A stretch of 64,000 bases of DNA from Klebsormidium nitens (Eukaryota > Plantae > Klebsormidiophyceae), in assembly GCA_000708835.1 (NCBI GenBank), contig DF237352.1, positions 21,352-85,351 on the forward strand, given 5' to 3'. Under the pieces are notes generated by a model. That model was given only the letters and a program-made list of their open reading frames with translations, was not told where the DNA came from and ran no database searches. Shown one piece after another: positions 5,401 to 55,513 of the stretch. The position numbers and the translations under genes were made by a program. Numbering within the stretch: the first letter of the stretch is position 1; each line of letters starts with the position of its first letter.

Positions 5401-8400
5401 GAGGACCGGTTAAGATTCGGATGATGGTCTCGAGCGTTTTCTCCGATCTTCCGGCGCTCGCGGACATGCTCAAGTTCAAGCTGGGGGGGTTCCACGCGTC
5501 CAGATCCTGCAAGCACGTCGGCGGCTACGTCGACGGAAAGCTGGTCTACACGGACGGCCGCCGACTCGCCCGCGACGGTTGCGAGCCAAAGAAAATGGAC
5601 GAGGTGGCGGCGGCCATGCTGGAGCACCTGGGGGCGGAAACGAAAGCCGAGCGGACTGAGATCGGGCACCGGACAGGCGTGATCGGGTTCAGCATGCTGC
5701 TGATCCTGTCGGCGGCATTCTGTCTGCACCTCGTGCATGACGTATGCAGCGACTTCCTGCACTGCGGGCCGGAAAACCTCTGCAAGCATCTGGTCCGCGA
5801 CCTGCTGTACGGAGTGAGCCGGAAGCAGGGGGAAACTACGACGATCGTCGAACCCCCTCGGGCGGATCTGAAAGAGTTCGGGAAGCGGTTAGCGGGGATC
5901 AAGCCAACGAGAAAGCTCGCCAGCGGCCGGTGGCCCGCGGACCCGGCAAAGCGGCCCCTCGGCTGGTGGAAGGCCGACGAGCACATGAAGGCGGCGACCG
6001 TGTGCTTCGTCACCGCCTTTGCGGGCATCACCGACCCGGAAGCCTACGCGGTTGTCCAGCTCGTGGCCTGCATCCACACGCTGGTGTTCGTCGTCGGCAC
6101 GAGGGGCGGGTGGACGGCCGAGCTGGCGCACTTGTTTCGGCAGCTGTGCAGGGCCAAGCTGGTCCGCGCCGAGGAGGACGCGCTCCCCAAGCTGCGACCG
6201 CTCGAGCACGAGACGTGCCTGCACATGCCGGCAAACGTCCGGATGCACGGCCCCCCCGACGCGTACTGGTGCTACGCGCAGGAGCGATACATCCGGAAGC
6301 TGGTAAACACGCCCAATAACGGAAAGCAGATAGAGACGACCCTCCACGGGCGGACCTTGGCCGCTCTCACGGTCGGGTGGCTGCAGCGCCGCCGACGAGA
6401 AGAGCAGCTTCGCGCGGCCGGCCGGACGACGGGCGACGAGTCGTGGGAGCGCGCGCGCGCGCGCGTGGCGGACGGAGTCCTCTTTGCCGCGTCGCAGCAG
6501 GAGGCCCGGGGCTACTTGACGGTGTTGGAGCGCGAGCCGCCACGCGACGGGAGGCCGTCGGACGAGCGGCTTTTAGCGAGCATGCGAACGGAGGGTGTGG
6601 CAATCGGTCAGCTGCCGGAAAATTGGGAGCGGCGGTCCTTCATGCGCCTCGAAAACCCGCAGCGGCTGGCCGTCGAGAAGATTCTCGACAAGGAGGCACG
6701 GGGTGCGGGGCAGAACGGGGTCCGCACCGTCCGGTTGGAAGCCGGTACTGTCAAACGGGTGAAGAGCATTCAGCTGGGGGAGAACAACTTTGCGGTTGGC
6801 GACTTTGCGGTGCTGCGACCGGAAGCCGCGGGCGGATTGGACGAGTACGTGCTGGTGGACTCGTTTTTCACAGCAAAGCCGCTGAACGGTCCCCGGCGGG
6901 TCTTTGTCCAATTTTCAGCCTTTCAAACCCAAAAAGACGGGGTAACCGGGGAACCTCTCGGCGGGAGCCACCACAACTGTCTCATGCTGGACCCCCTTGA
7001 GCAAGACCAGGAGCGCGTCCGGCTGGCTAGGGACCTGCATCGGCACTTTGTTCCCTACCCCACTCCCGGCGAGACCGTCTTCACCGGGAGCAGCCACGTC
7101 ATCGAGGTGGCGCAGAGCGGGTTCGGGTTCGATGCGCACGACGTATGGGTGCCGGTTTACCCCCGGGTAAGCAGGCTCACTTTTCAAGGACGCATTTCTA
7201 AGAGTGTCCTGCTTTTCTTTCCTTCTCGGCGCAGAGGTACATCAAAAAATTTGACAACCAGATTTTGACTTTGCTTTCGACTTTTGTAGTGCCACAGTTA
7301 TGGCTTCAAAACGATCATCTCAGTTTTAGGCGGTTCTCAGTATTGGGCGGCACTCGAGGGAATATGAAGAGCCGGATCCTTGTTGCGTTTCAGAATCTAA
7401 AACCGACAGGTTGCTTTTCATCCGATGTTAATTAGTAAGCTGCAAATTCGACCGCTCCTCATCCAATCTACGATACCGAAGCTTCAGAAGCTTCTTGGAA
7501 GGCGCTCTGATGTACTCGCTTCTTCCCAAGACGGCTCCCTAACTGCTGTCGCTTCCTTGTGAGTGAAGCTGCTAACAATCTGAGCTGAATTCAAGCGGGT
7601 TTATTTCGGTCACCTCACTGTGTGATGAAGCTTTCGTTTTACCACTGGCCGCTGACTTCCACCTAATTCGAGGTGACTGCTGTCACGGATCCGTGATGAC
7701 AGGCCGTCCGTTTTGCATCGGCCGAAGGGGCTTTGAGAAACGATTCTTGTCGCCGAGAGCATCTCTCAGATACGTCTTCGAATGCAGTCAATACTTCTTG
7801 AACAAGTGATTAAGCTACTATGAACTTGCTCTGACTTTCATCGAGTAGGCCAAGAGAGGGCACGGTGACACATCGCGCTCTCTGGTCGGTTAATTCTTGA
7901 CCGTTTGGGAACCTTCTAAAGACGTCACACGATCATTCGTTCTGAGAAAGTTGCAAAGCGGCGTTGACCGGCTTCGGTTGTTTGGTTGTTTTCATTCTCG
8001 AATTCGGCATTAATCTATTCGATTAGTATAAATTCTGAATGCTTTCTAACTGATCTCAATCATTCTTTTAATGACGCGTCCACTGTATGGCAGCTTCGTA
8101 GCCAAACCATCAGACAAAGCAACCCGGGCTTTGCAGGTTGGGGACGTGGTGCGGCTGGCGGTCCGTGAGCCTCCGGAAGTCCGCCAAGAGGGCGTCGAGG
8201 GGCAGTGGGGATACGGAGTGCCGTACGACATCCTGAAGTCCGTACGGCCTGACTTTTCTCTCTCGTACGCGCTGGTCAAGCAAGTGAGCAGCGGCCAGGG
8301 GAGGATGGCCGTCGTGCAGTGGCTGCGGCGCTCGGAACCCGCTGCATCAGACGGGGAGGAAAGCGATTGGACGCTGTGGCCTATAGCCGGGCGCACGGCG

Positions 8401-11259: not shown

Positions 11260-11795
11260 TCTCTTCACTTGCATTAATTAGAAGGCGGTGATGTCAATCG
11301 TTGGGAGACTTGGTCAAAGGCTCCGGCATTGCTCGGTCTCAGCGCAAGTACGTTATACATACCAATTTTCTGCTCGAAGAGACGTGATCACGTACACATC
11401 ATACACGAAAATCAAAGCCTCTGCAGAGGCTGCGCGTGTTCCCTTTCCAAAATCAAATCGACAAAAGGTATGGTGCACCGTTTTCATTGGGTCATGTTTG
11501 CAGGGCTGCCGTACGGCATAACGATAGTATATAGATCATTTGCGTCGATCGCATAATGAAAGGGTTTAAAACTAGTTGAACCTCGTAGCTGCGATTGACC
11601 TGATATATGCCAGAGCTACTAGTGGACGAAGTACTGCTTCCTACGCTCACTTATGTTGAAACTGAAAGTCACGAGTTTACCGTTTATGGTAGTAAAAACT
11701 TGGGTCAAGGACTGGAACTTCTGACACCCACCCTAATCTCTCAGTCGAAAACGAGCTAGCGTCCCCCGGTCTCTCCTTTGAAGTACACATAGCTT

Positions 11796-13074
11796 CTACA
11801 GGGGCGCTCCGAGTACTATGAAAGCTGCAGCGAAGCTTCCCCCCATAACCGCTCCGCCTGAACCCGCCCTGGAAGCTGCACGAAGGGTGTCGGACCAGGA
11901 CTCGGGCGTTGCTTGCTCCGGGTCTTCGACGAGGCGGGCTGCGATGGGGAGATTTGCTGCCATCAACCCGCCCGCAAGCGCACCTCTCAAGATCCGGGAT
12001 AGAGCTTTCTGCAGGGCGGGTTCAGAAGGGGCGGAATGAGACACCTCGGGAGAGGGAACTAATAGCTAAGAGTAGAACGGTGTCAGAAGGAAAGCATAAC
12101 TGGTTACATGCTTCTGCACCAAGTCAGGCAGAAACGCACACCTGTTAACTTGGTTTGGTAGGAGCGAAACCTTGCTTTAATTTGAAAGGATCTGGCACGT
12201 CGTCTTCTGAGCTTGACATTGATTGGCAGTATACAAGTTTCGTTCGATGTCCGCGTGGTACTAGAAGCAAAAGTTTTCAAGAAAATTCGAGCGGACTGAG
12301 AATTTCGTGGCGACCGTTGACGAATCAATGCGGCACCACCGTCCGCCCCCGCTGGCACCCTGCTGAACTTGGGAGCGACACCCATGTCAATAGCGTAGCG
12401 TCACGAAAACCAGGCTGGAAAAGAGACTGATCATCACACCAGTACTACTACTAGTAATTTCCAATACAAGTAGCCGCTGGAGCGTTTGCCAGGTGTATAA
12501 TACTTCAAACATGTGGTGCCGTTGTACTGGGAGTTTGAGAAATGCATCGCCGCTTCAAACTGCGTTGTTCAAGTGGCTGTGTTGCTGAAGACTTTAACCG
12601 ATATCGGTTAAAGATTTAAGTAATCGATTTTCTTTGTGTCGCGTTGCTCGAGCGGACGCTAATCTGCCCTTTAAACAGAGTTGACCTGCTTGAACAATCG
12701 CGAACGTCCAGGTTTCGGGTGGACTACATGCTGGAACAGCAACACGATCAAGATCCTTCATTTCCAGGATGTCAATGTTGCTTGGCTACACGGTGCAGCA
12801 ACATTCATGGGGCTGAGACTTGTAGGTTCTCCCAATCGTACTGTATGATGGACCTACCTTTTGGAATGTTTTGTTCGGTTAATTTCCGTCAAGGATCTCA
12901 ATGTTGACCAGATTTTTTTCTCCATTCAATGCTTAAAGCAGCTACTGGTCAACATTAACCACGGCTGCTGACTGTGACGGTGGTCTCATAGCAAGTGCTC
13001 ACCTCAACAGATCTGAGCACCATGCTCGACGCAGGCCGCGCGCTCCGAAGTGTGCTGATAACTTGGCTGCTCAT
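11796..13074 (-). CDS. Small Gly/Ala-rich predicted 2-TM protein, paralog 1 (94 aa, two exons)
   Basis: Exon 1 13003-13074 (MSSQVISTLRSARPASSMVLRSVE; /gtgagc) and exon 2 11796-12008 (ctgcag/; KALSRILRGALAGGLM...TPESWSDTLR...GGAVMGGS) join in phase 0. Homologous to three other copies. Confidence 0.7.
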
Positions 13075-13294
13075 GGCTGGTTTCACAGGAGCCTCTTCAC
13101 CGCCTCTTCTTGATGTACAGCAAGCTGATTTTGTGACTTTAACGAGGTTGAGCCCGGTTCCGGTTCAAATACAGTAGATTCTCGTGAAAATGACGAACTC
13201 ATCTGATTTGTTGACAGTTTATAGGCTTTGCTTTGCAGATCATCTGCTAAAAGATCAAGCTGTACGATCAAGCGAACGGAGAGTCACGTATCCC

Positions 13295-13480
13295 GTCTTC
13301 CGCGCCAGCGCCGCATCGTGCGGACCTCGCGGCCGGCGGTCTGGCGCCCCTCAGCTGGGGATACAGCCGGGCGATCTGGCTGTCGGGGCAGGCCGGCCGG
13401 CCGGCCGCTGGTCATGTGCCGCAGTCGATGGCTGCGCGAGGGGGCCGGCGGGCCGCGTCGCGCTGCGCTGCAGGGTTTTA
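13295..13480 (-). promoter_or_regulatory. GC-rich GGCCGGCCG island upstream of paralog 1; homologous islands at 15665-15845, 18715-19510 and 24145-24290
   Basis: Very high GC with GCAGGCCGGCCG and CAGGGTTT motifs, lying 170-230 bp upstream of exon 1 in every unit. Promoter function is inferred. Confidence 0.5.
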
Positions 13481-14181
13481 GCTAGCAGGAACCTGAGGAA
13501 CTTGCAAAGATCCCAATCGTGTGGATCGTGATACTTTCGGTGTACCGATTCTAATCGGAATTGCAGATGATTTCGCATTTCGGATATGCTATACGCGTAG
13601 TCGCTTTAGATCCGGATTCTCCAAGTGCCAGCCAGTTTGCGGTGTAATCAGCAACGTCTGCGGATACTTCACTTCGAAAACCTCCAGAACCTGGCATTGT
13701 GCTCGCGCAGCGTCAGGACGGGATAGTTTGCCCGGCTACTAGCGGGACTGGAAGTCCCTGTTCGCTATCTTTGGAGTTCACGAAGACACTGAGTTCATGA
13801 AGCTATTTCTCCTCAACTATACATGACGAGAAGAACACCTACGACATCCTGCAGAGGAAAGTTTCTTCCCTCGAAAGCTTCCGCCTTGGTGGTGACGTGA
13901 TCCTTTCGGTTAAGCCAGCGGGTGTAATTGACAGTCCCTGCTTTGTTTTTGGGTCCGGCCGTACTGTGAAATTGACATGCATACACGCGATTTGTCGTTC
14001 AATCCGACTCACACATCTATATAGGACATAAGAGAAGCAGCCACTGCTTATGTACTCTGCAAAGCTTCAATGTTATTTCTTCACAGTTAGAGCTTGTAAT
14101 GTATTCGTTGAGAACGAGCTATCATCCATGATCGCTCTTCTCGGTGTATTGTGCAACAGATTACGGTGGATTCCTAGCCTG

Positions 14182-15461
14182 TTACATCAGATTCCGAACA
14201 AGGATTGAGGTAGCTGCAGTGACACTTCCTCCGAAAAGCGCTCCGCCTAAACACGACCTGGAAGCTTGACGAAGGGATTCGGGCCAGGACTTGGGCGTTA
14301 AGCGGCGGGAATCCTTTATGTCTGGACCTTCAATAAGGCGGCCTGCAAGGGGGAAGGCTGCTCCCATTATGCCGCCCGCAAGCGCACCTCTCAAAATCAA
14401 AAGTAGAGCTTTCTGCACGGCGGGTTGAACAGAAGTCGAGTTAGAAAATTCGAACAGAGACTTCTAGAATGAATTGAAACAGTATCAGGAAAAGCAGACA
14501 TAATCAAGCATGTGGTGAATAGTCAGTGGGCTAGTGAGTTGCCTACTTAAACAATCACTAAAGATTGGGACTGCTGGTCAAAGTCTGAGGTCAAACGGAC
14601 ACTCTCTTTTCTGTTGATATGCTTGGGGAACCTCTTCGTAGGAGTTTCTTGATATGTTATTTAGTGACTAGGGCTTGTGGTCGTTTGATTTGGGATTCAA
14701 CGTCCAACCTTCGTAGAAGCAAACATTTCGAACAAGGTACGAAATAAACTGCTGACCCAATACAGTCAACTGAATATTTTGTGATGACTGTTGACAGTAA
14801 CGAGGTACGAGGCAAGCACTCTTCGCCACTGCTGGCACCCTGCTGAAGGTGGGAACGACGCCCCTTCAAAGTATTACAAGATCCGGGCTGGAAAGAGAGA
14901 GCCTAGTAGTCCTCCATCAAGACCGTGACTAATTATTGCTCTCGACTAGTCGCGGCTGGAACACTTGCAGAACGTTCCATACATACAAAGGTGTCTTTGT
15001 TCAAGTAACGGAGATATATACAACTTCCAAGTGCAGCTTGACAATGATCCTTCAGAACTCATGCTGCTGAAACCAACAAACCAACGGGGGTTTTCATTTT
15101 TAATCTCCTGTATCTGAACCGCTTTTCGAGGCTATTAGCTTGCTCATACAAATCAAAGTCGACCATTATTGCTTCGATCAACGTATTTTGTTTGCCTTGA
15201 CCCCGCCTTTACGGTCTAATGAAGGAACTGAATTTTCGTGGGCAGTCTAAATCTTTCGAGTATCATTCATTTCTATGGTGGGTCTTACCTGCTGACAGGT
15301 TTTGTTCAGGTGTCTGTCACATGGGCGATTACGAGCAGAGTGGAAGGAGTCCCCAAGTGTAATATTGCTTAGTGAGTCGACTGCTGAGCATCTACTGCCG
15401 CTCCTGACTTTGACGGACATCTATTTTGTCGAGGGCTTACCTGATACGATTCGTCCCCCAT
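14182..15461 (-). CDS. Small Gly/Ala-rich predicted 2-TM protein, paralog 2 (about 83 aa)
   Basis: Exon 2 14182-14412 (gtgcag/; KALLLILRGALAGGIMG...TPKSWPESLR). Probable exon 1 15441-15461 (MGDESYQ; /gtaagc), phase 0. The first exon is less certain. Confidence 0.6.
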
Positions 15462-17371
15462 TTTGCTCACTTGGGCGCTCCTCGTGTTTGATTTTCCTGG
15501 GAGCCTCTTCAGCACGTACTGCCGCCCCTTCTTGGTATCCAGGTAGCCGGTGGTCTGGTTCAGTGATGAGCTTGCGCCCTGCTTGCGCTCGGCCCGTCCT
15601 CTAAGTTGTCACAATGACGAAGGAACGAAGTTTTGTTGACAAGCCGTGATTGCCACTCTCCGTATATCTCATCCGCCGTCGGCGCCGCGCCGTGCGCCGG
15701 CCGCGGCCGCAGGATGATTTGGCGGCCAGGGTTTGGGCGAGCAGGGGTTTGGTCTGGCCATCGCGGGGGCAGGCCGGCCGCGCTGGTTGTGACGGGCCGC
15801 AGCTAATAGCTAGCTGCGGCCGGCAAGCCGCGTCGGCCTGCAAGGAAGGGGGGTTGACGAACTCCGAAATCCTGGTGTGTTTTGCTATGAGATGCTTATT
15901 ATAGTACCAGTCGCAAAATCTTTCGGGTACGCTAGTCGCTTTAGATCCTCAAGGAATCGGCAGGGCCATGCAATGTTTGCGGTAACCTATATGATTACCG
16001 TAGCAGCAATGCTACGGGGCAGCAAATTCAAACGTCTCCTGGACTTTCATTTCGAAAACCTTAGAGCCCACCGGGCGCGCACGCATGAGTAGGAGAAGAG
16101 TGCGGAAAAAGCTGCCAAAGATTCAAGGCCAGCAGATCGAGAATCTTGAAAGTCCGGCCGGCAGCTCGGGGCGCGCGGCCCATCAGAATTTTGTTCGTGA
16201 AGTCCGTCGCTCGACGTGATAGTCTATCGATTCCGAAGCTTCAACAAGAATTGTCAGAGGCGATCGCAGATCCTTGTTATCGTTCTCAGATCGAGTCGCA
16301 AAAACTGCCCTGTTGGACACGCGTAGTACGGCCGCACTTCCGGAAGCTCAATGTCAACTTTCCAGTTGCGCCCACGAAAGGGCCGCTCACAAATAGCACC
16401 GGTAACGCTTCCAGGATTTGCAGCTTAGTACAAATGGCAGGGTGACGGTTCCGGAAGATTTTTCTGTGGCCAGTGAGAGCACCGCACAAAAGTCCTAGCA
16501 ATTATGCGTCAACCTTTGTAGATCAATGTAAGATGTGCGTCTGTTTGTTGACAGTCTATGGAGCTCACTCAAGTGTGGCGCTCGTACCGGGCCAGCCCTC
16601 ACCATAATGTAATCATGTATCAACGTACGACTTGCTTGGGATTATGGTCGTAGCAGAAGACTCCTACCGTTGGAAACGAGAACACGAGTTATCAGCCCTC
16701 GAATATGGATCGGTTAGGATAAACCAATGCCGAGTCTGATTTGCAGGACGGGCGCAGGAGTTTCGAAGCGTCGCAGCTGCTTCGACAACAGATCAAACAG
16801 TGAAGGTGATCAGAGATCTGTGTTATCGCTGAAACGACTTTGCCTGCATCGGCCTCGATTAGCTTGGAGAGCGGTGTGCAGTGCTAGAGCCTGGCCCGGT
16901 GATTCCGGCCCAGTAATGTCCAGTATTGAATCGAGCATGTCAGACATATCATTCTTTGGCTCGAAGATGAATCACAAGACCAACATATAGTACGGTAAGC
17001 CCTTGCAAAACCTGTGTCTTACCCATTCCTCAAAAGCCTAGGGACACTCATGGTGCACCGGTTCTCTTCGGTCAAGGTTTTAGAACGTCGTTAAATCACT
17101 GGACAGATCGTTTGGTCGATCAAACGTCCGAAGCAAGTCTTACAAACATAAATTGCATACCTCCTGATTGACCTGATCTGTCAAAGCTTCTACCGGACGA
17201 GGCTAAGCCTGCTTCTCGCGTCAGCGAACTGGGCTAACGTTAGAACTCAATAATGGACAGTTTAAATCGACCGCCTACATTACAAGAAGCATCCGACAAC
17301 TAAAGCAAACACTCCGTCGAAAACGAGCTAGCGTCTCCCGGTCTTTGCGGTGGATTGACAAACTTCCAGAG

Positions 17372-18511
17372 TCAAGCCAAAATGATCATCGCAAAACCTG
17401 CAGTGAGACCTCCCGTTAAAACCGCTCCGCCTGAAGCGGCCCTGGCAGCTAGACGAAGGGTGTCGGGCCAGGACACGGGCGTTGTGCGGTATTCCGAATT
17501 CGTTACACTTTCTGGACCTTCGAGGATGCGGCCTGCGATGGGGAGGGTCGCCCACATGACCCCGGTCCCGAGCGCGACTTTCAAGATAGGGGAGAGAACA
17601 CTCTGCATGGTAAATTCAGGAAGAGCGGAATCAATAGCCTGGAGGAGGCACTTCTGAGACGAAAAGTATCAGAAAATCACAGCTGATCAAGCGTATACGA
17701 AGCGCGCGCGGTAATCTCAAAGCTGGCAAGCATTGAGGCTTATTTACCATTGAGACTGCTGGCTACGTCTCGAGGCAATGAGACTGCTGGCTACGTTCTG
17801 GACTAAGGGCGACCTTTTCTTGGTTGGAGCGAAACCTTGCTGTGAAAGGTTCTGGATACGTTATCACTGACTAAGATTTTAAACGATTCGACTAGGTTCC
17901 AACGTCCAGAGTGGTAAAACCAACACTCGCCAACACGCAAACAGTCAAGCGCTTTTCGTGGCTTTGTTTACTTGTTATACCTGCTAGACCGTTTGCCCAA
18001 CGTACAAAAAAAACAGGTGCCCTTGTTCAAGTAACGTGGTTTTGACTTCAAATTGTGAGATTGACTTGCTGGTTGGCATCTTCTTCATCCAGTTGCTTTG
18101 ACGTTGATGAACGACCGATTTTCTTTTTGTCCCTGTGTCTGGGTCATTGAACCGATGCTATCTTGCTCCAGAAGAAAATTCAAAGTGCTTGAACAAACTT
18201 TGAGCGGGTCAGAGTTGACAACGGCTGGGTCTCTAGTCTGAGATTACAGTTAGCTCTGCCATCCGGTATCGGCTTGTTCGATGGCTCTTCCTTGCGAGGA
18301 AGTTTTGTTCAGCTGTCCCTTGATGTTCTCAATCAAGAGCAGACCGTGATTTTCGTTCATCCCTCAGAATAAAACAGCTACTGTTTACCAGCAATCAGCC
18401 GCTGTATGTGATTATTGTCTCCTGACATCAAGTGCTTACCTCAGAAATCTTGAGCACCATGCTCCGAGACGCAGGCGCGTTCGCCATTGTGTTGACCACT
18501 TGGCTGCTCAT
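17372..18511 (-). CDS. Small Gly/Ala-rich predicted 2-TM protein, paralog 3 (100 aa)
   Basis: Exon 1 18440-18511 (MSSQVVNTMANAPASRSMVLKISE; /gtaagc) and exon 2 17372-17602 (atgcag/; SVLSPILKVALGTG...TPVSWPDTLR), phase 0. Confidence 0.7.
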
Positions 18512-18774
18512 GATTACTGATTTCCTGGGAGCGTCTCTACAGCCTCTTCTTGATGTTCACCAAGCTGGCTCTGTCACTCTTCTGAGCTTGCGTCCGGGAA
18601 AAGCTTCTCGTGAAATGTTGCGTGAATTTGACGAAGGCGGCTGACTTCTCACATTGTATAGGCTGTGATGGGAGTGGTGAAGATCATCTGCTTATACGTT
18701 CAAGCGGGGAAGGCCGCATATCCCGTCCCCCGCGGGCGCCGCACCACGCGGCGCCGGCCGGGGGGGCCTCGCGG

Positions 18775-19328
18775 NNNNNNNNNNNNNNNNNNNNNNNNNN
18801 NNNNNNNNNNNNNNNNNNNNNNNNNNNNNNNNNNNNNNNNNNNNNNNNNNNNNNNNNNNNNNNNNNNNNNNNNNNNNNNNNNNNNNNNNNNNNNNNNNNN
18901 NNNNNNNNNNNNNNNNNNNNNNNNNNNNNNNNNNNNNNNNNNNNNNNNNNNNNNNNNNNNNNNNNNNNNNNNNNNNNNNNNNNNNNNNNNNNNNNNNNNN
19001 NNNNNNNNNNNNNNNNNNNNNNNNNNNNNNNNNNNNNNNNNNNNNNNNNNNNNNNNNNNNNNNNNNNNNNNNNNNNNNNNNNNNNNNNNNNNNNNNNNNN
19101 NNNNNNNNNNNNNNNNNNNNNNNNNNNNNNNNNNNNNNNNNNNNNNNNNNNNNNNNNNNNNNNNNNNNNNNNNNNNNNNNNNNNNNNNNNNNNNNNNNNN
19201 NNNNNNNNNNNNNNNNNNNNNNNNNNNNNNNNNNNNNNNNNNNNNNNNNNNNNNNNNNNNNNNNNNNNNNNNNNNNNNNNNNNNNNNNNNNNNNNNNNNN
19301 NNNNNNNNNNNNNNNNNNNNNNNNNNNN
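18775..19328. other. Assembly gap (554 N) inside the GC-rich upstream island of paralog 3
   Basis: Run of N flanked by very GC-rich GGCCG sequence. Confidence 0.95.
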
Positions 19329-22300
19329 GGCCGGCCGCCAGGGTTTGGGTGAGCAGGGCCGGGGTTTAGACCGGACTGTCTGCGCTGGCATGGCTTTCGG
19401 GGCAGGCCGGCCGCGCCACGTGCTGATTACTGGGCGGCCGCGGCCGCACTGAGTCAACGGCTGCAGTGTGGGGGCCGCCCGGCCGGCCCCGTTTGGCTGC
19501 GCCGCACTCAGGGAAAGGGGTTTGAGACAGCAAAAACTTGCAAAGATTTTGATGATGAACCTCGGTACCGGTATGAGATCCTGATCTGAGTTGCAGGGAC
19601 CTTCGAATAAGCTAAGTCGCTCTGCATTCCAAATTCCCAATTGCCACCGGGCCAGCCAATTTGCGGTGTAAGCAGCAACGTCTCTGAAGACTTCGCTTCG
19701 AAAGTCCAGAGCCTGGCATCCTGCAGCTTTTGCAGCATAAGCACAGTGAGGAGCACAGGGTTTTTTTGGCGGTTAACCATAGTCGGTTATGGGCTGGTTC
19801 GAAGCTGGTCAACTGTACAATGACCAGACTCGAGCAGTGACCGGGTTCTTAACATGGCTATAATGCGGTTATTGGTCAAAGAGCCAGACTGCAGATTGGT
19901 TAGCGAACCTGGTTAGCAGCCAAACCTTCCCTGTGGAGGAAGCTGCGAAAGATTGAAGGCCATCCATCGATTAACCTGAAAGACAGGCCGGCAGCTTCAG
20001 GGTGCGCGACGGTGGCCCATCAAGTCTTGAGTTACCAGTTGCAGATTCATAAGTTAGTCCGTCACTTGACGTCAACGTATAACGACCTCAAGTGTGCAGA
20101 CGTATGACGACCTGCAGCCGCTCTGCGCGCGGCCCTTGGACGCGGCCGCCCTCTCGCGTACGCTCTCGAAAGCACATGTTCAATATGCTTCAAAGGCGCC
20201 CACGTCGAATCCGGCCCGCTACTATAGCTGTGAGCTCCAGCAACGCTATCGATTCTAAAGTGCAAGGTGGCAAGCTGCAGCAGAGGAAATCAAAAGTGCC
20301 TAGTGGGTTCAAGGATTCCTTCTCATGCGAAAGCAGCCCAACGAAACTGTGAGCTTAAAGTTTAGAGCGTCAGCCTTCGTAATCTGATTCAATAATAGGT
20401 AGCATGTACGTTTGGCCGACACAACATGTACCATGTACGTTTGTCTCTTTATCTGTGGGGCCATTCAGGCGCGGCGAGCGTACCGGGCCAGCCCTGATCA
20501 TTGTCATCAACGGTCATACCGGTGCGACTTGCTTGGGATTCTGGTTACCAGTGGAGTCGAAGATCCGGCCCGCACTTGGAAACGAGACCAGGCCGCACCG
20601 TGGGATCAGCCCTGGAGATGGATCTGTCGGGATAATCAACGTAGAGTTTGATTTGGATCGGACCTGCTTGAGCGGACGTACTGCTACGCCTGTGTTTTGA
20701 GGTGTCTTGCTACGACGCCCTGATTTGCTATCAATAAAAATTCTCTGTGCACTTGGTCTAATTGAAGGGGATAACCAGAGAGTTTGGGCTCTGGATATTG
20801 AGCCATCTGGGCAAGTTGAAGAAATTGAAGATTGAAGAAATTGCTATGTCACATGCAACTGCACTTTTGGTGCAATTGGCGAGGTGAACATTTCCGAAGT
20901 GTTCACTCATTTCAAACGTGCACCCCTTGGCCGCGCCGAAGGTTAGCAACGAAGACGCGATGTATTCCTGGTTTACGTTTCGTGCTTCGATGTCGCTGTT
21001 CGGATTAAACAAGCCCAATACCGTTCCGTAAGCTGGAAGCAGAAGCTGGCGACGCCCTCCGGCGCAGTACCCACGGATAAGATGCAAACGGATAAGATGC
21101 TCGTTAGATTCGCTTCCTTTGACAGGACTTCGGACTGTTTGAGTTTAGGGAACAAAACGAGTCGGCTGTTTTATGTTTCCGAATACGTACTGAAGGCAAA
21201 TTCATCACTGTTTTGAATCCGGAAAGGTGCTTCGCCTGCGGCTTGAGTATCGATGGTGATGGTAGGCCTAAAATGGGCACGGAGGCAAAAGAAAGATGAT
21301 AACGAAGTCGGACAGGGGACAAGTAAAATTTAAGTTGGAGTGCGAGATATAAGTCGAACTAAAACTTAGCTTCGAATATTTGGATCTGCTCGAACATTCT
21401 GCTGCTCCGCGCCGAACACTGGACAAAAGAGATCTAGAACATGATGTTGAAACCATCCTAAGCGGAAATCTAGGTACGATTGGAGACGCCCCACCGGCAT
21501 AGGTTGAGCCGTTGGCAGATCTTCGCATTCTCGCTCACACTCTTAAGAGCCTTTCTGCAGAGCTCCCTTGGTCGTCCGCCGGCCGCCGCTTCCGACGGGC
21601 CGCCCGCGGGTGCCAGGAGCGCCGCCCATAGCTTTATCCTACTCAGCCAGCCACTCATACTCGCCGATGTAAGCAGATTTTTCTGGGGAAAGCGAACCTG
21701 TGCTGCTCCGTCCCCAGACCCGAAGCCACATCAGCTGCTGACGTGGAAACGCCGACCACGACGTGAAAGATGACGTAAACTTCGCCCCGGCTGTTGCGGT
21801 CCTTGGATTACCTTTTCAGCGGGCCGGCCACACGCGGTCGGTCGCCCTTCGCTTCATTGCACAGCGGCTGGAGACGTGACTACTGTGACTCGATTAAGAG
21901 AAAGCCTTTGGCCATTATCCTGTCTGAGACTTGGTTTATTTCCCTCGTCTGGACTCGGTCCCAGTCCCTAGCTCGAGCCAACTCTGATAGGTGTAACTGA
22001 TCTGACAATGTCCGAAGTAAGTGGGAACGCCGTCGGGAAATGAGATTGAGCCGCAGAGTGTACTGCAGAATTGATTTGAAAAAAGTGATGGCGCGTGCAC
22101 GTCATTTAGGAAAGGCAGACTTTAAAGCGACGAGCAGGTTTTTGAGACGGATCAGACCGGAACCAGACAAGAGCTTTCTCTGGGTGAACTCTGATGAGCA
22201 TCACCGGCTCCGCTAATGCTCGGTGTCAGAGCAAGTAAGGCGTGCTACACATCTATCATCTGCTCGAAGAGCAATTGCGAGGCCATCATGTACGGATTCA

Positions 22301-22672
22301 GAAGCCCCTGCGAACTGCGCACGTTCGCTCTTGAAACCACATTAACATCGAATCAACGTGCACCGTTTCCACCGGGTCACATATGCAGAGCTGCGGTACA
22401 ACATTTCCTTAGTAGACAGAGCATTTGCGTCGGTCGCATTTGGTAACACAATCTCCAAATCATGCCACTCGTAGCTCCTGGTTGAGGAGGGGGCACTGCT
22501 TCTCGCTTTGCCACTCTTGCCACTCTTGATTGTCGAAACTCAACTTAAAACGAAAGTTGACCGTTTCTCTTTTCTAATCAAAGATTCAAGCAGCTGTGGA
22601 GCATCCAAAAAACGAGGGCAAAGTGTCCGTCGAATACGAGCTAGCGTCTCCCTTTTTGTGAATGAAGCCTTT

Positions 22673-23982
22673 CTAACAAAAACCAAGCACAAAGACCGTG
22701 GAAGCTGCACTGCAACTTCCCAAGAAAACCGCGCCGCTTGAGCCCATCCTTGAAGCTAGACGAAAAGTGTCAGGCCAGGACTCGGGCGTTGTGCAGTACT
22801 CCGTTGAACCTTTTGGACCTTCGAGAAGGCGGCCTGCAATAGGCCAGGCCGCTCCTACGATCCCGCCCGCAAGCGCAGTTCCCAAGATTGGGGCTACAAG
22901 AACCTGCATGGCGGTGCCAAAAACAGCGGAATGAGAAACTTGGAGGAGGCACCTCAGAAATGAAGGACTTATCGGGCGAAAAAAGCACAGCTGAACCCGC
23001 CTACGGTGTAAGTACTATTATTAAGCTGGCAAGAGTTAGATGCTCTGTACCTCGAATAAACCGCTAGTCAAGACTTGGGGTCGATCGAACGCGATAACGT
23101 CAAGGTAGTCTAGCTGGGAGCGATGTGAAAGCAGCCAGACACAAGTTGTGTACTTCGCGTTGACTTGCAGGGGACTTACGGAATATCGTGCAAATTGGAT
23201 TTACAGATTAGTTGACATTCAAATTAATTAAAGTGGTAGAAGCAACGATTACCAACAGAGTTGAGCACAACTGCTGACCCAGCGAAAGGCAGGATCTTCC
23301 GTGCGGCCAATAATACTAGCCACTGGTTTCCGCTGCTGGCACACTGCGGAAACTTGGGACTTTAGCTCATGCCAAGGCTGTCACGAGCACCGGGCTGGAA
23401 ACGCCATTAACATTATGTAAGACTAGCTGATGCCCTCTACCAGTGATATCGTCGCCGCTGGAACATGCGGTAAGAGTACACGGCACTCTAGAACAGGTGC
23501 CTACTTTTCTGGGTAACGTGAGTTGAGCCCTTCACCGCTGCGTGGATCTTCGTGATTCAAGCCGCTACCTTCCTGAAACATATTGACCGCTTTCTTCACT
23601 AACATTCTTGTGTTTAAGTCGCTTGAACCGAGGCTTCTTGCTTGAACAGTCTACTTGACGTGCTTGAACAAACTTAACGATCCTGGTTTCAAGTGGATCA
23701 CATGCTGGAACTTCAATCAAATCACGAAGGCCTTGGTTTATAGGACCCATTCATGATGACTATGATGGGTCTTTCAGCAGCCTGCTGGAATGTTGTCGTT
23801 CATCTGTCGGACAAGCTGACTGTCATTCTTGTTCAACTGTGCTTAAGGCAGCTACAGGTTGATATTGGCCGCCGCTCCTAAGCCTGACGGAAACCTCCAG
23901 TGCAAGTGCTTACCTTGAATGCTAATCTGAGCACCGAGCCCGCAGTGGCGCTCCTGGCCACTGTGCTTACTTGATTGCTCAT
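22673..23982 (-). CDS. Small Gly/Ala-rich predicted 2-TM protein, paralog 4 (99 aa)
   Basis: Exon 1 23914-23982 (MSNQVSTVARSATAGSVLRLAFK; /gtaagc) and exon 2 22673-22903 (atgcag/; VLVAPILGTALAGGIVG...TPESWPDTFR), phase 0. Confidence 0.7.
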
Positions 23983-25419
23983 AGTTGATTTCGTGGGGGC
24001 CACTCCACCGCCTCTTCAAGTTCTTGATATCAAGCTCGCTGATTCTAAGAGTTTGCTGAGCTTGCGCCGGCTCAGACTGAGATAGCTCCTCGTCACACTT
24101 ACAAAGCCGGTTGACTTGTTCGTTCAACGTTCAGAGAAAGTCGCGGTCGCGTATCTCGTCGGCCGCGCCGCGGCGCCACGCTTCGGCGGGCAGGGTTTGG
24201 CGGAACGATTGGCAGAGGTTTGGTCGCGCGCCATCGGGGCAGGCCCGGCCCGGCTGCGTCGGGCTGCGCCGCACTCGGGTCGAAGGGGGTAATTGTCGGA
24301 ATTTGGAAACGGCAAGAACTTCAAGTTCAAGGCATGCAATCTTAACGTCGGAGTCGCAGACACTTTTGCGAATGATGAGTCTCTTTGGATCCGAAGGAAA
24401 GCTGCAAACGATATTCAAGATCTGGCATCCAATCAAGAATTAGTTAGCTAGACGACCGGAGGGGAGCTTCAATTACGACTAGGTGCGTACGTGCGAGCAG
24501 AATCGAGTTCAGATCGAAAGCTTTTTCAACAATGACGTCCGCTGGATCTGATGTCACCATGCAGGAAGACGACCTCAAAGCGTAATTAGTAAAAGAATCA
24601 AAGGGTAGCTCGCGATTGGAGAGCAACAAATCTCATGATGTACTGGACCTCGAAATTGACTCATGCAATTGCCTCATGGCAAACTGCAATGCGCGCTCCG
24701 CGCACAACCGGCGTTCGCCGTGGCAGCACTATATCGAGGAAGTACTAAGGCACATGCTGAGCCCGAATATGCTTTGAGTCGTTGCGCAAACGGCCCTAGC
24801 TGCTCACATGCAAAGCCTGCGCTAGCAGATAGCGATCCGACATGCGACCGTCGCTAACAGAAAACTACACCGGAGGATAAAGTCATGCAAGCTAGTGCCT
24901 GGGCGTGACGGTAAAGATACGTCGTCGAACGTGCTCACTTATACACAGATAACATACATGCAATCGACCTCACCAGGCAGGTTCTTACAGGCAGCGCGCA
25001 GCGGCCTTGACTCAAGCTTTCTGCACGCCTAGATTATATCCACTACATAACTATCGCCCGCCACATTTTTGCTGTGTCAGCCTCATGCAAGCACTAGTAA
25101 CTTGAACTGGTCCGGAAGTATGTCCAGCCCAACTGGAAGATAAGGGCACGGCCAACAAGTAATCGGGGTTCCTCCTTCTGGATAGTTGAGGCCGATGATC
25201 ACTCACAATAGGTCGCGATCGGTGAGGATCATCAAGAGAGCAAAAGATTCTTCGTGCAATTGTCGCGCATTGTGCGCAATCCTTCGATGCCCGATCTGGC
25301 TTTGGCCAATTTGGCCCATGGCATGGCCTGTGATACTCCTGTCCTAACAAGGCCTGGCTAATCAGAGTCAACACATTTAAGCACCGTAGCAACTCGAGAG
25401 GTCAGCAACTCGTCCCTTG

Positions 25420-28400
25420 TTACTTTCCGGCTCCCCCGAGCCTCAACGCCTGCAGGATTCGGCCACCCCCAGGTGACGGGTGAGGGCCCTTGTAGTTGCC
25501 CAGCTGCACGCGAGTAAACGAAGCATGACGTCATCCTCAAGCAGACTCCAGTTCACATTGTCACCTCAGTTGGCATCAAGGTCTGGAAAAATGCGTCTAA
25601 CTAGTGCGGGTCCAAGAACTCGATCCTTTGCGCTCAGAAGGCTGACCTGATCAAGCTACAGAATAACCGCCGGGTTTCGTGTTTCAAACTTTAGCCAAAC
25701 AAAAGAATTGCCGGACACGTCCTCGACTGAGTCTGCTACACGATGTCAGTCTCTGCCAAACGTACGCTTTGCTGTCGCGAATAAATAGTCTCAGGTCGGG
25801 AACAAGAAGTAAAAGCACACAGCAAGAGCGCTCACCTGCGCTTCGGAGTTTGCCTTTGCTAAAGCCACCAGTCTTTCTTGAGCGGCTTGAATGTTCTCGG
25901 GCTGCAAAAGAAGGAGAGAGACTCAGAACGACACAGAAGGATGCTGGGAAAGGAGTAGACGGCGGGTGTGAAGAAGCTGCAGCCGGTGGTCTTGTATTGA
26001 TTCAACCAGATTACAGGGCTTCAGAATCTTGATGATTCAACGTTTTGAGAAGTCGGGGGCGTTTCTGGAACACAGTATGCTTGAGAGGGCATAAACGGAC
26101 GGCATTCACAGGAAGGCAACTACTGCCGACGCTCGTCGTCTCGGTGAGCACGTGGCAGTTGCTGACATCAGCACTCAGCGGTGGGCCGCGGCAAATTGTA
26201 TTCAAAAGTCGCTCTGTGGAGTTGCTGCAGATGCATCAGCGTGCGCGCAATACACGCAAAGGACGGCACAAATCTTATAAACGACGGTGTTTACACGATC
26301 TGGTATAGTATAGTATGCAGTTGACCGAAATGCGGAACAAGGACGTGAAGATACGCGGTCTGCATGCTTAAGGGACCGGATTGCCAGGCCAGAAAGAAGA
26401 GCGCCGCCAGAGTGAAACTGCATCTCGCAGACATCCACAAATCTCTTTCTTTTTGAGCTTTATATTGTGTATACTTCTCTTCCTTCCTCCTGACGTGATC
26501 GAAGAGAGCAACCCGCCTTGCCCGACCACGTATTGAGCGCCCTTCAGTCGGTCGGGAGGCGTCGTTCATGCTTTTGAAAGACTGGCTCGTCAGCTTCCGG
26601 GTTTCGAAGTTCTCGAATGTCGGAAGAAACCCTAAGATTGAATGAGAGAAACGCTGAATGAGAAGACAAAATCAGCTCACCTTGCGGACCACGTCTTGAG
26701 CGTGCTCGACTGGAGCGCCCTGTCGCACCAGACCAGCTTTTCTCTCATTTTCCCAGCTTTCGAGACAACGAATTTCAAAGAGAGACGAAACCACTCTTTC
26801 TATCGAGAAACAAACCGAGTTCGCAGAGAGACTAGCTCACCTTGCCCGACCACGTCTTGAGCGTGCTCGACTGAAGAGCCCGTCCGTAGGAGAAGGTGAG
26901 CGACCAGGGGTAAGGGCCGTACGCTTGGAGGGCGTTCAGGTTCAGTGTTGCCTCCTCTTCGCTCATGCCCCCGGACAAGAAATGGATGCCTGCGGGTGGA
27001 AATTCGAAGTTTGAGCAACTGCGTACGAGAAGTTGCACCAGGTATCTGAGGATGTTAACAGGTGAGTTGGAGCTATCGGACGGCTCACAGAATTGCCCCT
27101 TACAACCCGCCCTCAGGACTCAAGCTCGTTAGTGTGCTCACGACATGCAGCAAGACGCCCGATTTACGAGGCTGCACGGGGCGATATGCGTTCTATTTAC
27201 CTACTCGCTGCTCTGCCTGCCTGGACGAGGCACCGCAAGGCTGAAGGTGAAGCGCGAGCGTGATACTTTCGTTACTCAGGAGGCTTCACAACTCTATCCG
27301 CTGACTGCAGCGCTTATATAGTCGCTGATGTCACTGATACTCCTGTCACGGTGACACTCAAGTCATCCAAGATCAAATCACAAAGTCTGGTATCTTCTGA
27401 AGCAACCTTGCCTATCTTCTGTCGATATTATTTTGTGCATTGCCCCCGGCGCATCAAGACACCGAACGAAAGGGTTCGAGAATCTCATAGGACTGTCCAC
27501 ACCGTGCAGCAACGCAAAGGCCGCAAGAGGAGGAAAAGGGAGCACACGCCACCTACTTTTGAATAGATCTATGAAGTCAAGTAAACAGCTTTTAAGGTCT
27601 TAACAAATTGAAAAGCACAGAAAGCACCCGGCGGCACTCACTGGGGACTGCGGCAGGGACGCTCCGGAGCATGGTCCGGACGGTGTACTTTGCGACCTCC
27701 TCGGGGGAGGGGGTCGAGACGTCGAGGCCGGGCAGGATCATGTTGGGCTTCAGAAGGATGCCCTCCAACATGACGTCATACTCGTTGAGCAGCCGGAAGG
27801 TGTGGCTGTTCACCTTCTCGCTGATGTAAGCGGTGCGCTCGATGCTGCGGGGAAAGAGTTTACCGGGCAATGGTCAGGGCACGCTCTATAAGACCCATTA
27901 AGAGGGTCGGACACTGTCCCAATGCAGAGGAAGAGAACCGCGTGATGAGAGGTTGATGGAGGATCACCAAAATCACGATCCGTGTCGAAGTGTTTCTGAC
28001 CTAATCTTGAGGTGCATGACCCGCAAGTTGGCCGCACATTTTCGGAGTCCACCTATTCTTCCTCACTATGTCTTCGCTCCATCCAGAGCGCTCGTAAAGC
28101 TCTGCGCACTACAACCATCAGCAGAGAGGGGAAAGGCTGGCAACATCCTAAGAAAAAGGTCTTCGTCCCTGATCAAGTTCCACACAGAATGGAAACAGCA
28201 TCGTAACCCATTTCCATACCTGTAGTCCCCCTCGCCCAGCGTCACTTCCGGTTCCACGATCGGCACCAGCCCGTTGGCCTGGCAGATCTGCGCATAGCGC
28301 GCGAGCGCGTGGCAGTTTTCTAGAATGGCCGTCGAGGACGGGTGCACCGAGCTGTCAACTTTCAGGACTGCGCGCCATTTTGCAAAGCGGGCACCTTGAG

Positions 28401-30768
28401 CATAGTACCTGGAAATCAGGGGTTTTCGGAGTTCTAGCATTTGGCGAAGCACGGCTTTGAGTGTAGTACCTATGGGGGGTTTTGGAATCTTGGTGTACAA
28501 AGGGTCGAACTAGTTGTGATGGTCGATTGACTTTATACTAAACGACCTTCTTCCCAGATTTGTGCACGCAAGCAATTGTGAAGTCTTGAAATGCTTGGCT
28601 TGAATTCGGAGGTGGTCCGGAGGCAGTGCTTCCGGCATTTCATTATTTGGTGATTGTCAGCTCGCAGTTTGTGCAAAGAGTCTGTCCTGAATCTGGCGCT
28701 GGATCCCTGCCTGGCCCAATCAAGTGGAAACCATGAACATCTCATGTCTATGCAAAGTACAAAGAGTCCAAGCGTTTCAGCACAACGGCTTCACGAACTG
28801 TGATTCCAAGCTCGTCCGTTGCACAGAAACCTTCACGAGACTCTTGGAACTGACAGACTGCGACTATTTTTCATGCAAGAAACCTGACTTCTTTTGCCCT
28901 TACTTTTTGCAACGGTCAGCCAGCCCGTCCAGCCCCTGCGTCGACGTCTCCCCGTCGGTCCCGTAGATTGGCTGCAGCCCCGTATCGACCTTGATCCCTG
29001 GCACAATCCCCTGCTTCTGGAGGATCTCAACGAACGGAACGCCGTCCGCGGACGACTGGAACAGCGTCTCGTCGAAGAGAATTGCACCGCTAATGTACTG
29101 CCCGAGCCCAGGGGCGGTGTAGAGGAGCTGGCGCCAGTCACGGCGGTTGTCCTCGGTATTCTCGATGCCCACGCTTCCAAGCCTGCACACATGAGGTGTG
29201 GTAATTTCAGGAGGTCAGTAAGATGTGGGTCCATCATAATGTTTGGCTGCTGTATCTGACTTAGCCGGCTCTAGGGCTGGCTTTGTGCTCACATCCGGTG
29301 CTGACAGCCAAGAGGGGGCTTGAGCTTCACAGTTATTTCAGTTGCAAGAGGGTCGCTAGGCATATCTTGGATTGAATTGACATGCAAAATTGACCGGCTA
29401 TGAGGGTAAGCAAAAGCGACCTTTGTGCAAACTTGCACCCAATGCCCAAAGTGAATTGAGTCTGCGTTGATGGGGAAGCGATTCAAGGAATGGACGAACA
29501 GCAAGCGCATTGGCAGGTGCTTATAATGTCAGTGTTTGGCCCAGGAGTTCAAAGAGGCCTTTCAGCTGAAAGTAGACCCCTCTCAGATGCTCTTACTTCT
29601 AAGCACGTTGTCGCTGAGCAGCAGTCTCAAACATGTGCCGCTTTACTCGTGACACCTATTTGTCCCACTCGTAGGGCAGTAGATCCCTGCGCAGTATCAT
29701 TGATCTCCAAAGAAGAGGCTTATGGAGAATGTCTGTCGCTTTGTTTGACACCCTTGACTTTGCCGAGCTGACTGTCGGAAAACGCACAACTTCCAGGGAT
29801 ATTGAGTCTAGTCAACTGCCTGTCTAAGACCAGAACCCTAATCTGAGAACCCTAGAGTTTTGGCTCACCGCTTCCCCGTCGTCACGTTGCTCTCGTCCGA
29901 CGCCAAAATGCCCTTCCCGGGCGCGCCAATGTAAGCGGCCGTCTTGCGCAACTCCTCCGCATACTGGTTCTCTTTCTCGAAAGCGGTTGTCATCATAATG
30001 CCTGGCCGGCCAGCAGAGGCCTTCCTGGCGGGCAGGATAGCCCTGCCGGCCAATGAGAGGCTGCCAGCTGGCGCCGCACCCACGAAGGTGGAGGCTGCAG
30101 AAGAGGGGTAATATGAAGGTGAGTGGCTTGGGAAATGTTGTAACGTCATGTTGATGGGCGAGTAGAATACGAAGGGGTTCGTCACGTATTCGAATGGGGT
30201 GGATACGTGTATTGGTCAAGGTGGGTGCGGGTGCCAAGGGGCAAATCACAAGACTGGGAATTTAAGGGTTGCTCATTTTCTAATCTCAAAGTAAATTCAC
30301 TACCCCAAAACTGGTTCCACAGATAGGGTTTCATAGTCGAGATTTGCAGGGCACAAGCAATCCTGACGTGGCCTGTGAACTACTTCAGGCCTGAATGTAA
30401 AACTCTGGTCAACAGGAGGTTGCGACTACGCAAATAGCAATGAAAGCACCGGGCGTATGGACACAAAAGCATAATGTCAGCGTTCAGAAAGGCACAGTTG
30501 ACATGGAGCGGTGGCTGATCATAATGCCGCCTGCTGAGCAGATCTTGCCAATCTCTGTAATGTACCAATGTTTTGGTGAATGCCTACAATGCTGACATCC
30601 CTCACATTGCTCCTGACACGAGCAATGTGAAACCTAAGCAGTTTGAGAAAGGTGGCAGCTAACAGGTATTTCCATGAGCAGCAATGCGGGATTTTCAAGC
30701 AGAACAATACCTTGAAGACTGCTCTGCTTAAGCGCAGACCCCTGCGCCATCTGTGCCGCCGACGCCAT
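25420..30768 (-). CDS. FBA: Fructose-bisphosphate aldolase class I, plastid-targeted (417 aa, 8 exons)
   Basis: Exons 30711-30768, 29869-30094, 28904-29182, 28220-28408, 27642-27844, 26841-26989, 25836-25901, 25420-25503 total 1254 nt in frame. Motifs [37 protein letters not shown] (Schiff-base Lys), [14 protein letters not shown]. Ala/Ser-rich N-terminal transit-peptide-like segment. Confidence 0.95.
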
Positions 30769-55000: not shown

Positions 55001-55513
55001 AACTCACCCAACCATGTCCTCAGTCAAACCGTAAAACTCGTGAATCATGATTACAACAGGTAGCTTTCCAGGCCGGGCATGTGCTGGCCGAGCTGCAAAG
55101 GCGGCCACATCGGGTGAGCCATTCAGCCCCGGCACAATGATGTTCACTAGCTTTTCTAGTTCTGAATGCAATCGACAATTGATCTGGTCCCTCCTTCCAT
55201 TGCGTCGCCGCTGGTTGTGCGCCGAAGACTTTTGCCTGACCACAACCCTCCCATGGGTCAGAATATTGCGAAGAGAATGCTGCTGTTCGATCGGCTTCGA
55301 TAAAGACTGATTTGCGGAAAAGTTTCTCGGGGAAGTGCAAGCAAGACAAGACTGCGTTCTGCTTCTATATGATGTTGATGGTGGTGTTACAGGACGGATT
55401 CTAGTTGCGCTCACTTTATGACTACTCAAAGTACGCCCTTCAAGATTGACGCCAAAACCGAAAGATCCCCTTGGGACTGTGGGCGCACTGCTTGCTACTG
55501 AGCGGGAAGCCAT
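52044..55513 (-). CDS. Dienelactone hydrolase family protein (alpha/beta hydrolase) with long transit-peptide-like N-terminus (351 aa, 6 exons)
   Basis: Exons 55008-55513, 54539-54656, 54035-54205, 53304-53390, 52737-52835, 52044-52118 are in frame. Motifs PVVIMIHEFYGL, VIAPDTY, MGFCYGG (nucleophile Cys), IYGDRD (Asp), GHAF (His), QAWSELLAFL. Confidence 0.9.

Follow-up and report, generated by a model that had tools for sequence, protein, structure and literature searches.

A tandem array of four small two-exon genes in Klebsormidium nitens belongs to a lineage-restricted family of predicted two-helix membrane proteins with an odd selection signature

We examined a 64,000-nucleotide stretch of the Klebsormidium nitens genome (contig DF237352.1, positions 21,352 to 85,351), here referred to as the window, and all coordinates are window positions unless another locus is named. 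Klebsormidium is a model for how the ancestors of plants coped with land. Between positions 11,796 and 23,982, the minus strand carries four tandem two-exon genes (copies 1 to 4), and these belong to a real, undescribed and lineage-restricted family of membrane microproteins with an odd selection signature and a putative function. With moderate confidence, we regard the array as one of at least two Klebsormidium-restricted tandem clusters in which genes for small integral membrane proteins arise and decay by birth-and-death evolution; copies 1 and 3 are spliced as proposed, at low level, exon 2 is predicted to form a hairpin, and the proteins may have an accessory role in an organelle. The initial annotation of the window had put the array forward as a candidate new system; it is instead a gene family, for which no partner genes were detected, and not a multi-part system. 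As one member of this undescribed family is induced by high light, it offers candidate stress genes that standard analyses skip.

All four gene models of the initial annotation were present in the sequence at the proposed junctions; in 4/4 copies, a phase-0 intron runs from a GT donor to a TGCAG acceptor. In copy 1 (94 aa), the coding part of exon 1 (13003–13074, 24 aa, Ser/Ala/Arg-rich) is followed by an intron of 994 nt (12009–13002) and by exon 2 (11796–12008), which encodes a 70-aa hairpin domain and the stop. Copy 2 (83 aa) has only 7 aa in exon 1, counted from a downstream ATG (15441–15461), a predicted intron of 1028 nt (14413–15440) and an exon 2 of 76 aa plus stop with an intact frame (14182–14412). 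Copy 3 (100 aa) consists of exon 1 (18440–18511, 24 aa), an 837 nt intron (17603–18439) and exon 2 (17372–17602, 76 aa plus stop), and copy 4 (99 aa) of exon 1 (23914–23982, 23 aa) and a 1010 nt intron (22904–23913), both predicted from sequence, with exon 2 at 22673–22903 (76 aa plus stop). A fifth copy was not found in the window, at which the exon 2 profile detected the four with E ≤ 2e-34 and the next best match had E 0.2. The proposed common motif held as well, with 20 invariant columns across the four exon 2 products and 42–52% identity to copy 3; length differences were confined to the loop and the tail, and the loop indels were in frame. The other copies start with ATG, but in copy 2 the ancestral start site (about 15485–15480) reads ACG or AGG. 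A 23-nt inverted repeat, 87% complementary, was also observed in copy 1 (11849–11871 and 12012–12034), pairing the end of the intron with exon 2 around the acceptor.

The RNA evidence consisted of contigs assembled from the listed sequencing runs, whose status as RNA was guessed. Contigs covered exons and exon flanks only and skipped the introns, and 8 of the 24 listed runs, from two studies, contained 7–11% of the sampled words, which is about the exon share. The proposed junction of copy 1 was seen in contigs of both studies (X2 and X5), which extend exon 1 to at least 13203, and that of copy 3 was seen once, as the loose end of a contig at 17604 that carries the letters of exon 1. For copy 2, the proposed junction did not appear: the only contig, extending to 15573, joins 15441 to 14342 and not to the predicted acceptor at 14412, a shift of 70 nt downstream, and thereby skips 14343–15440 (1098 nt), with a frameshift and a 15-aa out-of-frame product. 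An in-frame isoform may exist despite this single contig at depth 2.2; copy 2 may also be decaying and on its way out.

AlphaFold folded exon 2 of copy 3 into a hairpin with helices at residues 3–28 and 45–75 (predicted local distance difference test, pLDDT, 79–80 in two runs; predicted template modelling score, pTM, 0.51–0.58). Exon 2 is thus predicted to encode a Gly/Ala-rich two-helix hairpin, with a polar loop ending in P-x-S-W. Hydropathy plots showed two hydrophobic peaks in 14/14 family members, and the proteins probably cross the membrane twice. The presence of two hydrophobic helices, with Gly and Ala together at 23–29%, is a feature that is not specific to the Tim17 family. Foldseek returned no match at E ≤ 0.001 and VIA none at Z ≥ 8, the retrieved structures being generic hairpins only.

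Family searches were run exon by exon with exon 2 only as the query; exon 1 (7–24 aa) falls below the length that most tools require. The joined models served solely to derive length, hydropathy and composition. The exon 2 profile detected eight credible relatives among 1.84 billion protein representatives, including the adjacent K. nitens hypothetical proteins KFL_000840145 (GAQ81572.1) and KFL_000840150 (GAQ81573.1); a third annotated relative, KFL_000840140, was found later. Together with one more gene, they form a second tandem array of four hypothetical genes (154–165 aa) on K. nitens scaffold DF237033.1, which adjoins an Ariadne-type E3 gene and also contains two broken fragments. Within this locus (L002), broken family fragments lie at 12103–12313, with an in-frame stop after helix 1, and at 14309–14371. 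The second array shares the same domain (profile E 1e-6 and 4e-5; 32–34% identity to copy 3), the phase-0 intron directly before it, the tandem arrangement of four and a flanking-gene remnant with the window array, but differs in that its N-terminal exon is acidic and encodes about 70 aa, its tail is polar and it is under purifying selection (0.47). The two arrays form separate clades (A, with the window copies, and B; 100% bootstrap), and the phase-0 acceptor lies directly before the domain in every intact copy. The second-array proteins are annotated but uncharacterised. The family was unrecognised in that no known family matched it, while these four relatives had already been annotated as hypothetical proteins.

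Outside this assembly, the second array was syntenic in sample SRR23617307, SRR20627847 contained the last part of a copy and, behind it, the first part of another, which makes it a tandem there too, and SRR23617210 held three further members. The Ariadne-region DNA of one sample was 72–86% identical to K. nitens, which fits a related alga. Searches of JGI metagenome, viral and bacterial/archaeal contigs yielded no relatives, and the family was found only in Klebsormidium-type algae (the window array, the second array and the three samples), in agreement with the lineage-specific expansion proposed earlier. The window copies matched no NCBI protein in any search, which suggests, without proving it since the word index missed known members too, that they are unannotated. 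By exact look-up, ten ORFs of the window were likewise absent. Five other matches (P0008 and P0010–P0013), long proteins with several short matches each, were dismissed as Gly-rich false positives. Taxonomically restricted tandem arrays under birth-and-death evolution typically show local duplication, decayed members and no homologs outside the lineage. The window array does likewise, but with an unusual split between suppressed radical and raised conservative changes.

Family accessions are unnamed in the main text of papers. One member, kfl00084_0150, which we equate with KFL_000840150 by naming convention, is in a list of genes activated by high light, rising from 94 to 250 fragments per kilobase per million (FPKM), with no Arabidopsis or Chlamydomonas match (PMC9121098, Table 1). 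A link to stress, as suggested initially, exists for this paralog in the other array and not for a window copy.

The in-frame indels and open frames had initially been taken to imply protein-level selection, with a ratio of nonsynonymous to synonymous rates (dN/dS, omega) near 1 considered to count against it. Open frames alone were unremarkable (absence of stop codons, P about 0.2), and the four copies stood at 1.1 in the core; selection was visible only after conservative and radical changes were separated. No indels were seen in the 62 core codons of the four copies where more than 20 were expected from the intron rate (about 0.03–0.04 per site per branch). Polar or charged residues had entered the helices once, versus a neutral expectation of 9.2 ± 2.9 (P 0.0004–0.0008), with helix limits that were set after viewing the alignment. 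The mean BLOSUM score of the differences, which covers all core sites, was −0.22 versus a neutral −1.05 ± 0.16. In a two-class codon model, the window copies had a conservative omega of 2.1–2.4 (p 0.0003–0.006 versus 1) and a radical omega of 0.36–0.53, and the relatives had values of 0.5–0.9 and 0.12–0.26, respectively; among 422 neutral simulations, the conservative value was reached in 1 and the radical value in 0. With a charge-based split, the conservative class reached only 1.3–1.4, which was not significant. In the relatives, the overall omega indicated purifying selection, at 0.47 in clade B (p 5e-6) and 0.41 in the other clade A members (p 1e-5). Since frame and hydrophobicity are kept and radical changes are suppressed, the copies are under protein-level selection with fast turnover: purifying selection on protein character is shown, while positive selection on the window copies is only suggested. 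The array is a clean example of a dN/dS near 1 that hides opposing forces, for which routine testing would lead to the mistaken conclusion of neutrality.

As to the job of these proteins, the most likely one, though a tentative and rather doubtful proposal, is a stress-responsive one in an organelle membrane, as an accessory or oligomerising subunit that would act in the manner of Romo1/Mgr2, with the mitochondrial inner membrane as the likeliest site. Both helices of the hairpin would cross one bilayer, the small-residue helix faces would allow packing between hairpins or against a partner, and Trp and Arg residues would fix the depth in the membrane. The first exon may be a swappable part that sets targeting or partner: in the window it is short, basic and Ser/Ala-rich, and its counterpart in the second array is acidic, with about 70 aa. 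After duplication, the window copies would have exchanged similar residues rapidly and avoided disruptive ones. Within their first 32 residues, copies 1, 3 and 4 have 3–6 Lys/Arg, 0–1 acidic residues and 34–38% Ser/Thr/Ala; basic, acid-poor N-termini rich in Ser/Thr/Ala are compatible with an organelle presequence.

Several observations weigh against this picture. The N-termini of the second array are acidic, unlike presequences, and in part of clade B the second helix shows no more than moderate hydrophobicity. The fold matches were all at noise level, the best (Z 7.8) being among unrelated hairpins. Expression is faint (contig depth 2–9), and the other 16 of the 24 listed runs, which bear the same species label, contain next to none of the window stretch. 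The high-light datum belongs to a distant paralog, and the overall omega of the four copies, 1.1–1.2 on the 62 core codons, is indistinguishable from 1.

One alternative, although somewhat unlikely, is that the family is a remote member of the Tim17 superfamily, i.e. a Romo1/Mgr2-like protein or a truncated DUF1757 protein with helices 1–2 only, diverged beyond detection. Its first support came from a language-model search, where the neighbours were DUF1757 (0.86, 167/256 features, below the guide of 170) and a Tim17 cluster (0.75). DUF1757 is similar in how Gly/Ala and basic residues are placed along its first two helices, and a profile of the DUF1757 N-terminal half scored 8/12 members above all 100 shuffles and 11/12 above the reversed sequence, at which beating shuffles is weak evidence, as shuffling destroys the hydrophobic periodicity. 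Structural alignments to Tim22 (64–150; Z 6.4–6.5, rank 8–9, below unrelated chains at 7–7.8) and Tim17 (9–82; Z 5.1, root-mean-square deviation 2.6) fell on the N-terminal part. Romo1 and Mgr2 are two-helix Tim17 members that equal Tim17 helices 1–2 (PMC5072337), and thus provide a precedent for the hairpin architecture; they also share Gly-rich membrane helices and a similar size with the window proteins.

On the other hand, no member was assigned to a family in Pfam or NCBIfam, and PDB sequence searches gave nothing significant, so that no hit to a characterised family, which the initial annotation had regarded as damaging to its proposal, came up. Single-member Pfam/NCBIfam matches at E 0.05–8 (e.g. 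GHMP_C, B12D and Shiga B) were treated as noise, and a resemblance to PsaK, PMP3/RCI2 or oleosin was discarded for want of a Pfam match. For DUF1757 (PF08560), none of the 14 members matched above the gathering score (21 bits), whereas 23 of 24 fungal controls did; these were scanned out of about 60 fungal-type proteins with the DUF1757 motif, fetched by a DNA pattern that Pfam validated. The DUF1757 C-terminal half, which holds further Gly-rich helices, is missing, its W-x-D-R-x-W-R-L motif is absent in all members, and the window proteins end right after helix 2. HHalign gave a probability of 0.7–2% over 23–29 columns, and the family profile failed to separate DUF1757 proteins from decoys (median −1.1 versus −1.5). 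No profile match was found to PF02466 (Tim17), PF10247 (Romo1/Mgr2) or solved Tim17/22/23/Mgr2 chains, with HMMER filters that drop matches weaker than about E 0.1. Moreover, Romo1/Mgr2 is conserved across eukaryotic groups, whereas the window family is confined to Klebsormidium, has expanded in tandem, evolves fast and carries a P-x-S-W motif in its loop. If the Tim17/Romo1 link were true, an ancient mitochondrial import module would have been recruited into a fast-evolving tandem family.

DUF1757 itself may be a widespread mitochondrial inner-membrane family. The fungal-type DUF1757 profile (L008–L067, alignment A5) matched the Euglena complex I subunit NDUEG9 (8IUF chain E9) with E 5.7e-12, a protein that was termed Euglena-specific (PMC10884005). 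One DUF1757-type member touched Pfam Tim17 with E 0.0012.

A role in defence or recognition, in which glycine-zipper hairpins would oligomerise into pores or else bind a foreign ligand, with microbes or viruses as the opponents in an arms race, is unlikely in our view. It would fit the conservative omega above 1, seen only in the window array, the tandem birth and death and the small-residue helix faces, and also the terminal branches of the window copies, on which omega was 1.36 versus 0.46 elsewhere (p 0.0013). However, signal peptide, cleavage motif and conserved Cys were not found, and exon 1 has no hydrophobic core (by eye and hydropathy), unlike secreted or processed membrane-active peptides of the bacteriocin or defensin type. 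Positive selection under site models, with p about 1e-4 on the whole exon, fell to 0.05–0.09 on the core columns once loop and tails were removed and was lost when codon rate variation was allowed, and it was rejected. In addition, the synonymous divergence (dS) per branch was 0.16 for the exon but an estimated 0.25–0.3 for introns, so part of the excess may come from a ratio inflated by gene conversion or slow synonymous sites.

About 40% of the codons in exon 2 of the four copies are slow at synonymous sites too, and 14/62 codons are identical in all four, which could reflect gene conversion or a nucleotide-level element.

Quite unlikely is relaxed selection, under which the window copies became dispensable after duplication and are drifting to pseudogenes, with the working members in the second array. 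The codon model that best fits the four copies has omega = 1 with codon rate variation, their terminal-branch value does not differ from 1 (p 0.27), and the unremarkable absence of stop codons, the low expression and the mis-spliced copy 2 without its ancestral ATG all point the same way. The core free of indels and the suppressed radical changes speak against it, however, and a neighbouring duplicated fragment did gain a stop codon.

A composite of these readings would be a long shot: a Klebsormidium-specific two-helix offshoot of Tim17/Romo1, duplicated into two arrays with swappable first exons, one array diversifying at membrane residues and thereby being an organelle-membrane pore or gate co-opted for stress response or defence in an alga closely related to land plants. 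Finally, copies of a non-autonomous transposon, or non-coding repeats with a chance resemblance to genes, are extremely improbable and largely refuted, since in spite of transposon-like genes elsewhere in the window (CxC4/KDZ) and some conserved third codon positions, the RNA is spliced, annotated paralogs are under purifying selection, no terminal inverted repeats bound the units and a conserved RNA structure in exon 2 was unsupported (covariation term +0.41).

The duplication that produced our favoured birth-and-death array covers whole units, as the introns align above shuffled controls and elements upstream and downstream recur in each. A conserved 31-nt stretch with the core TAGCTCGT lies 30–60 nt past each stop (11734–11764, 14097–14127, 17306–17336 and 22619–22649, minus strand) and is a possible element of the 3′ untranslated region. 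Upstream of each copy, on the same strand, a GC-rich element with an AAACCCT word nearby (about 13299–13478, 15673–15850, 18727–19512 and 24130–24280) is promoter-like and would act as the promoter. The AAACCCT (telo-box-like) words at 13478, 15734, 19346, 19763, 24198 and 11567 cluster at the upstream elements of the array, and 6 of the 13 occurrences in the window fall within 11.5–24.5 kb.

The GC-rich element of copy 3 is interrupted by an assembly gap (N run, 18775–19328), which is non-coding, begins 264 nt upstream of the ATG and affects no exon, intron or frame. Placed against the unbroken element of the other three copies, the two flanks align end to end, separated by only a few bases, and the real gap may be far shorter than 554 nt, or an insertion may lie inside.

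Between copies 3 and 4, we identified a decayed remnant of the late exons of a 584-aa gene that flanks the second array on DF237033.1 (21012–21825, minus strand; pieces 21825–21694, with a stop codon, and 21053–21012). Its position suggests that one locus was the source of the other. In the 584-aa hypothetical gene itself (L002, 989–7419), a stretch near 3845–4057 resembles adenylate/UMP-CMP kinase by eye, with no Pfam match on the tested pieces.

Elsewhere in the window, a 940-codon open reading frame (ORF) on the plus strand (4446–7268) looks by eye like a CACTA/Transposase_21-type transposase, with no Pfam match, and 55886–60452 (plus strand) contains a CxC4 (KDZ transposase-associated) domain (E 1e-7), the downstream ORFs probably belonging to the same element. 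On the minus strand, an exon of class I fructose-bisphosphate aldolase (28066–28500, E 3e-24) and a weak match to dienelactone hydrolase (55004–55513, E 0.02) were detected. Tandem repeats of short period, about 130–150 nt, occupy 36593–37062, 40837–41232, 42611–42893 and 43476–44118.

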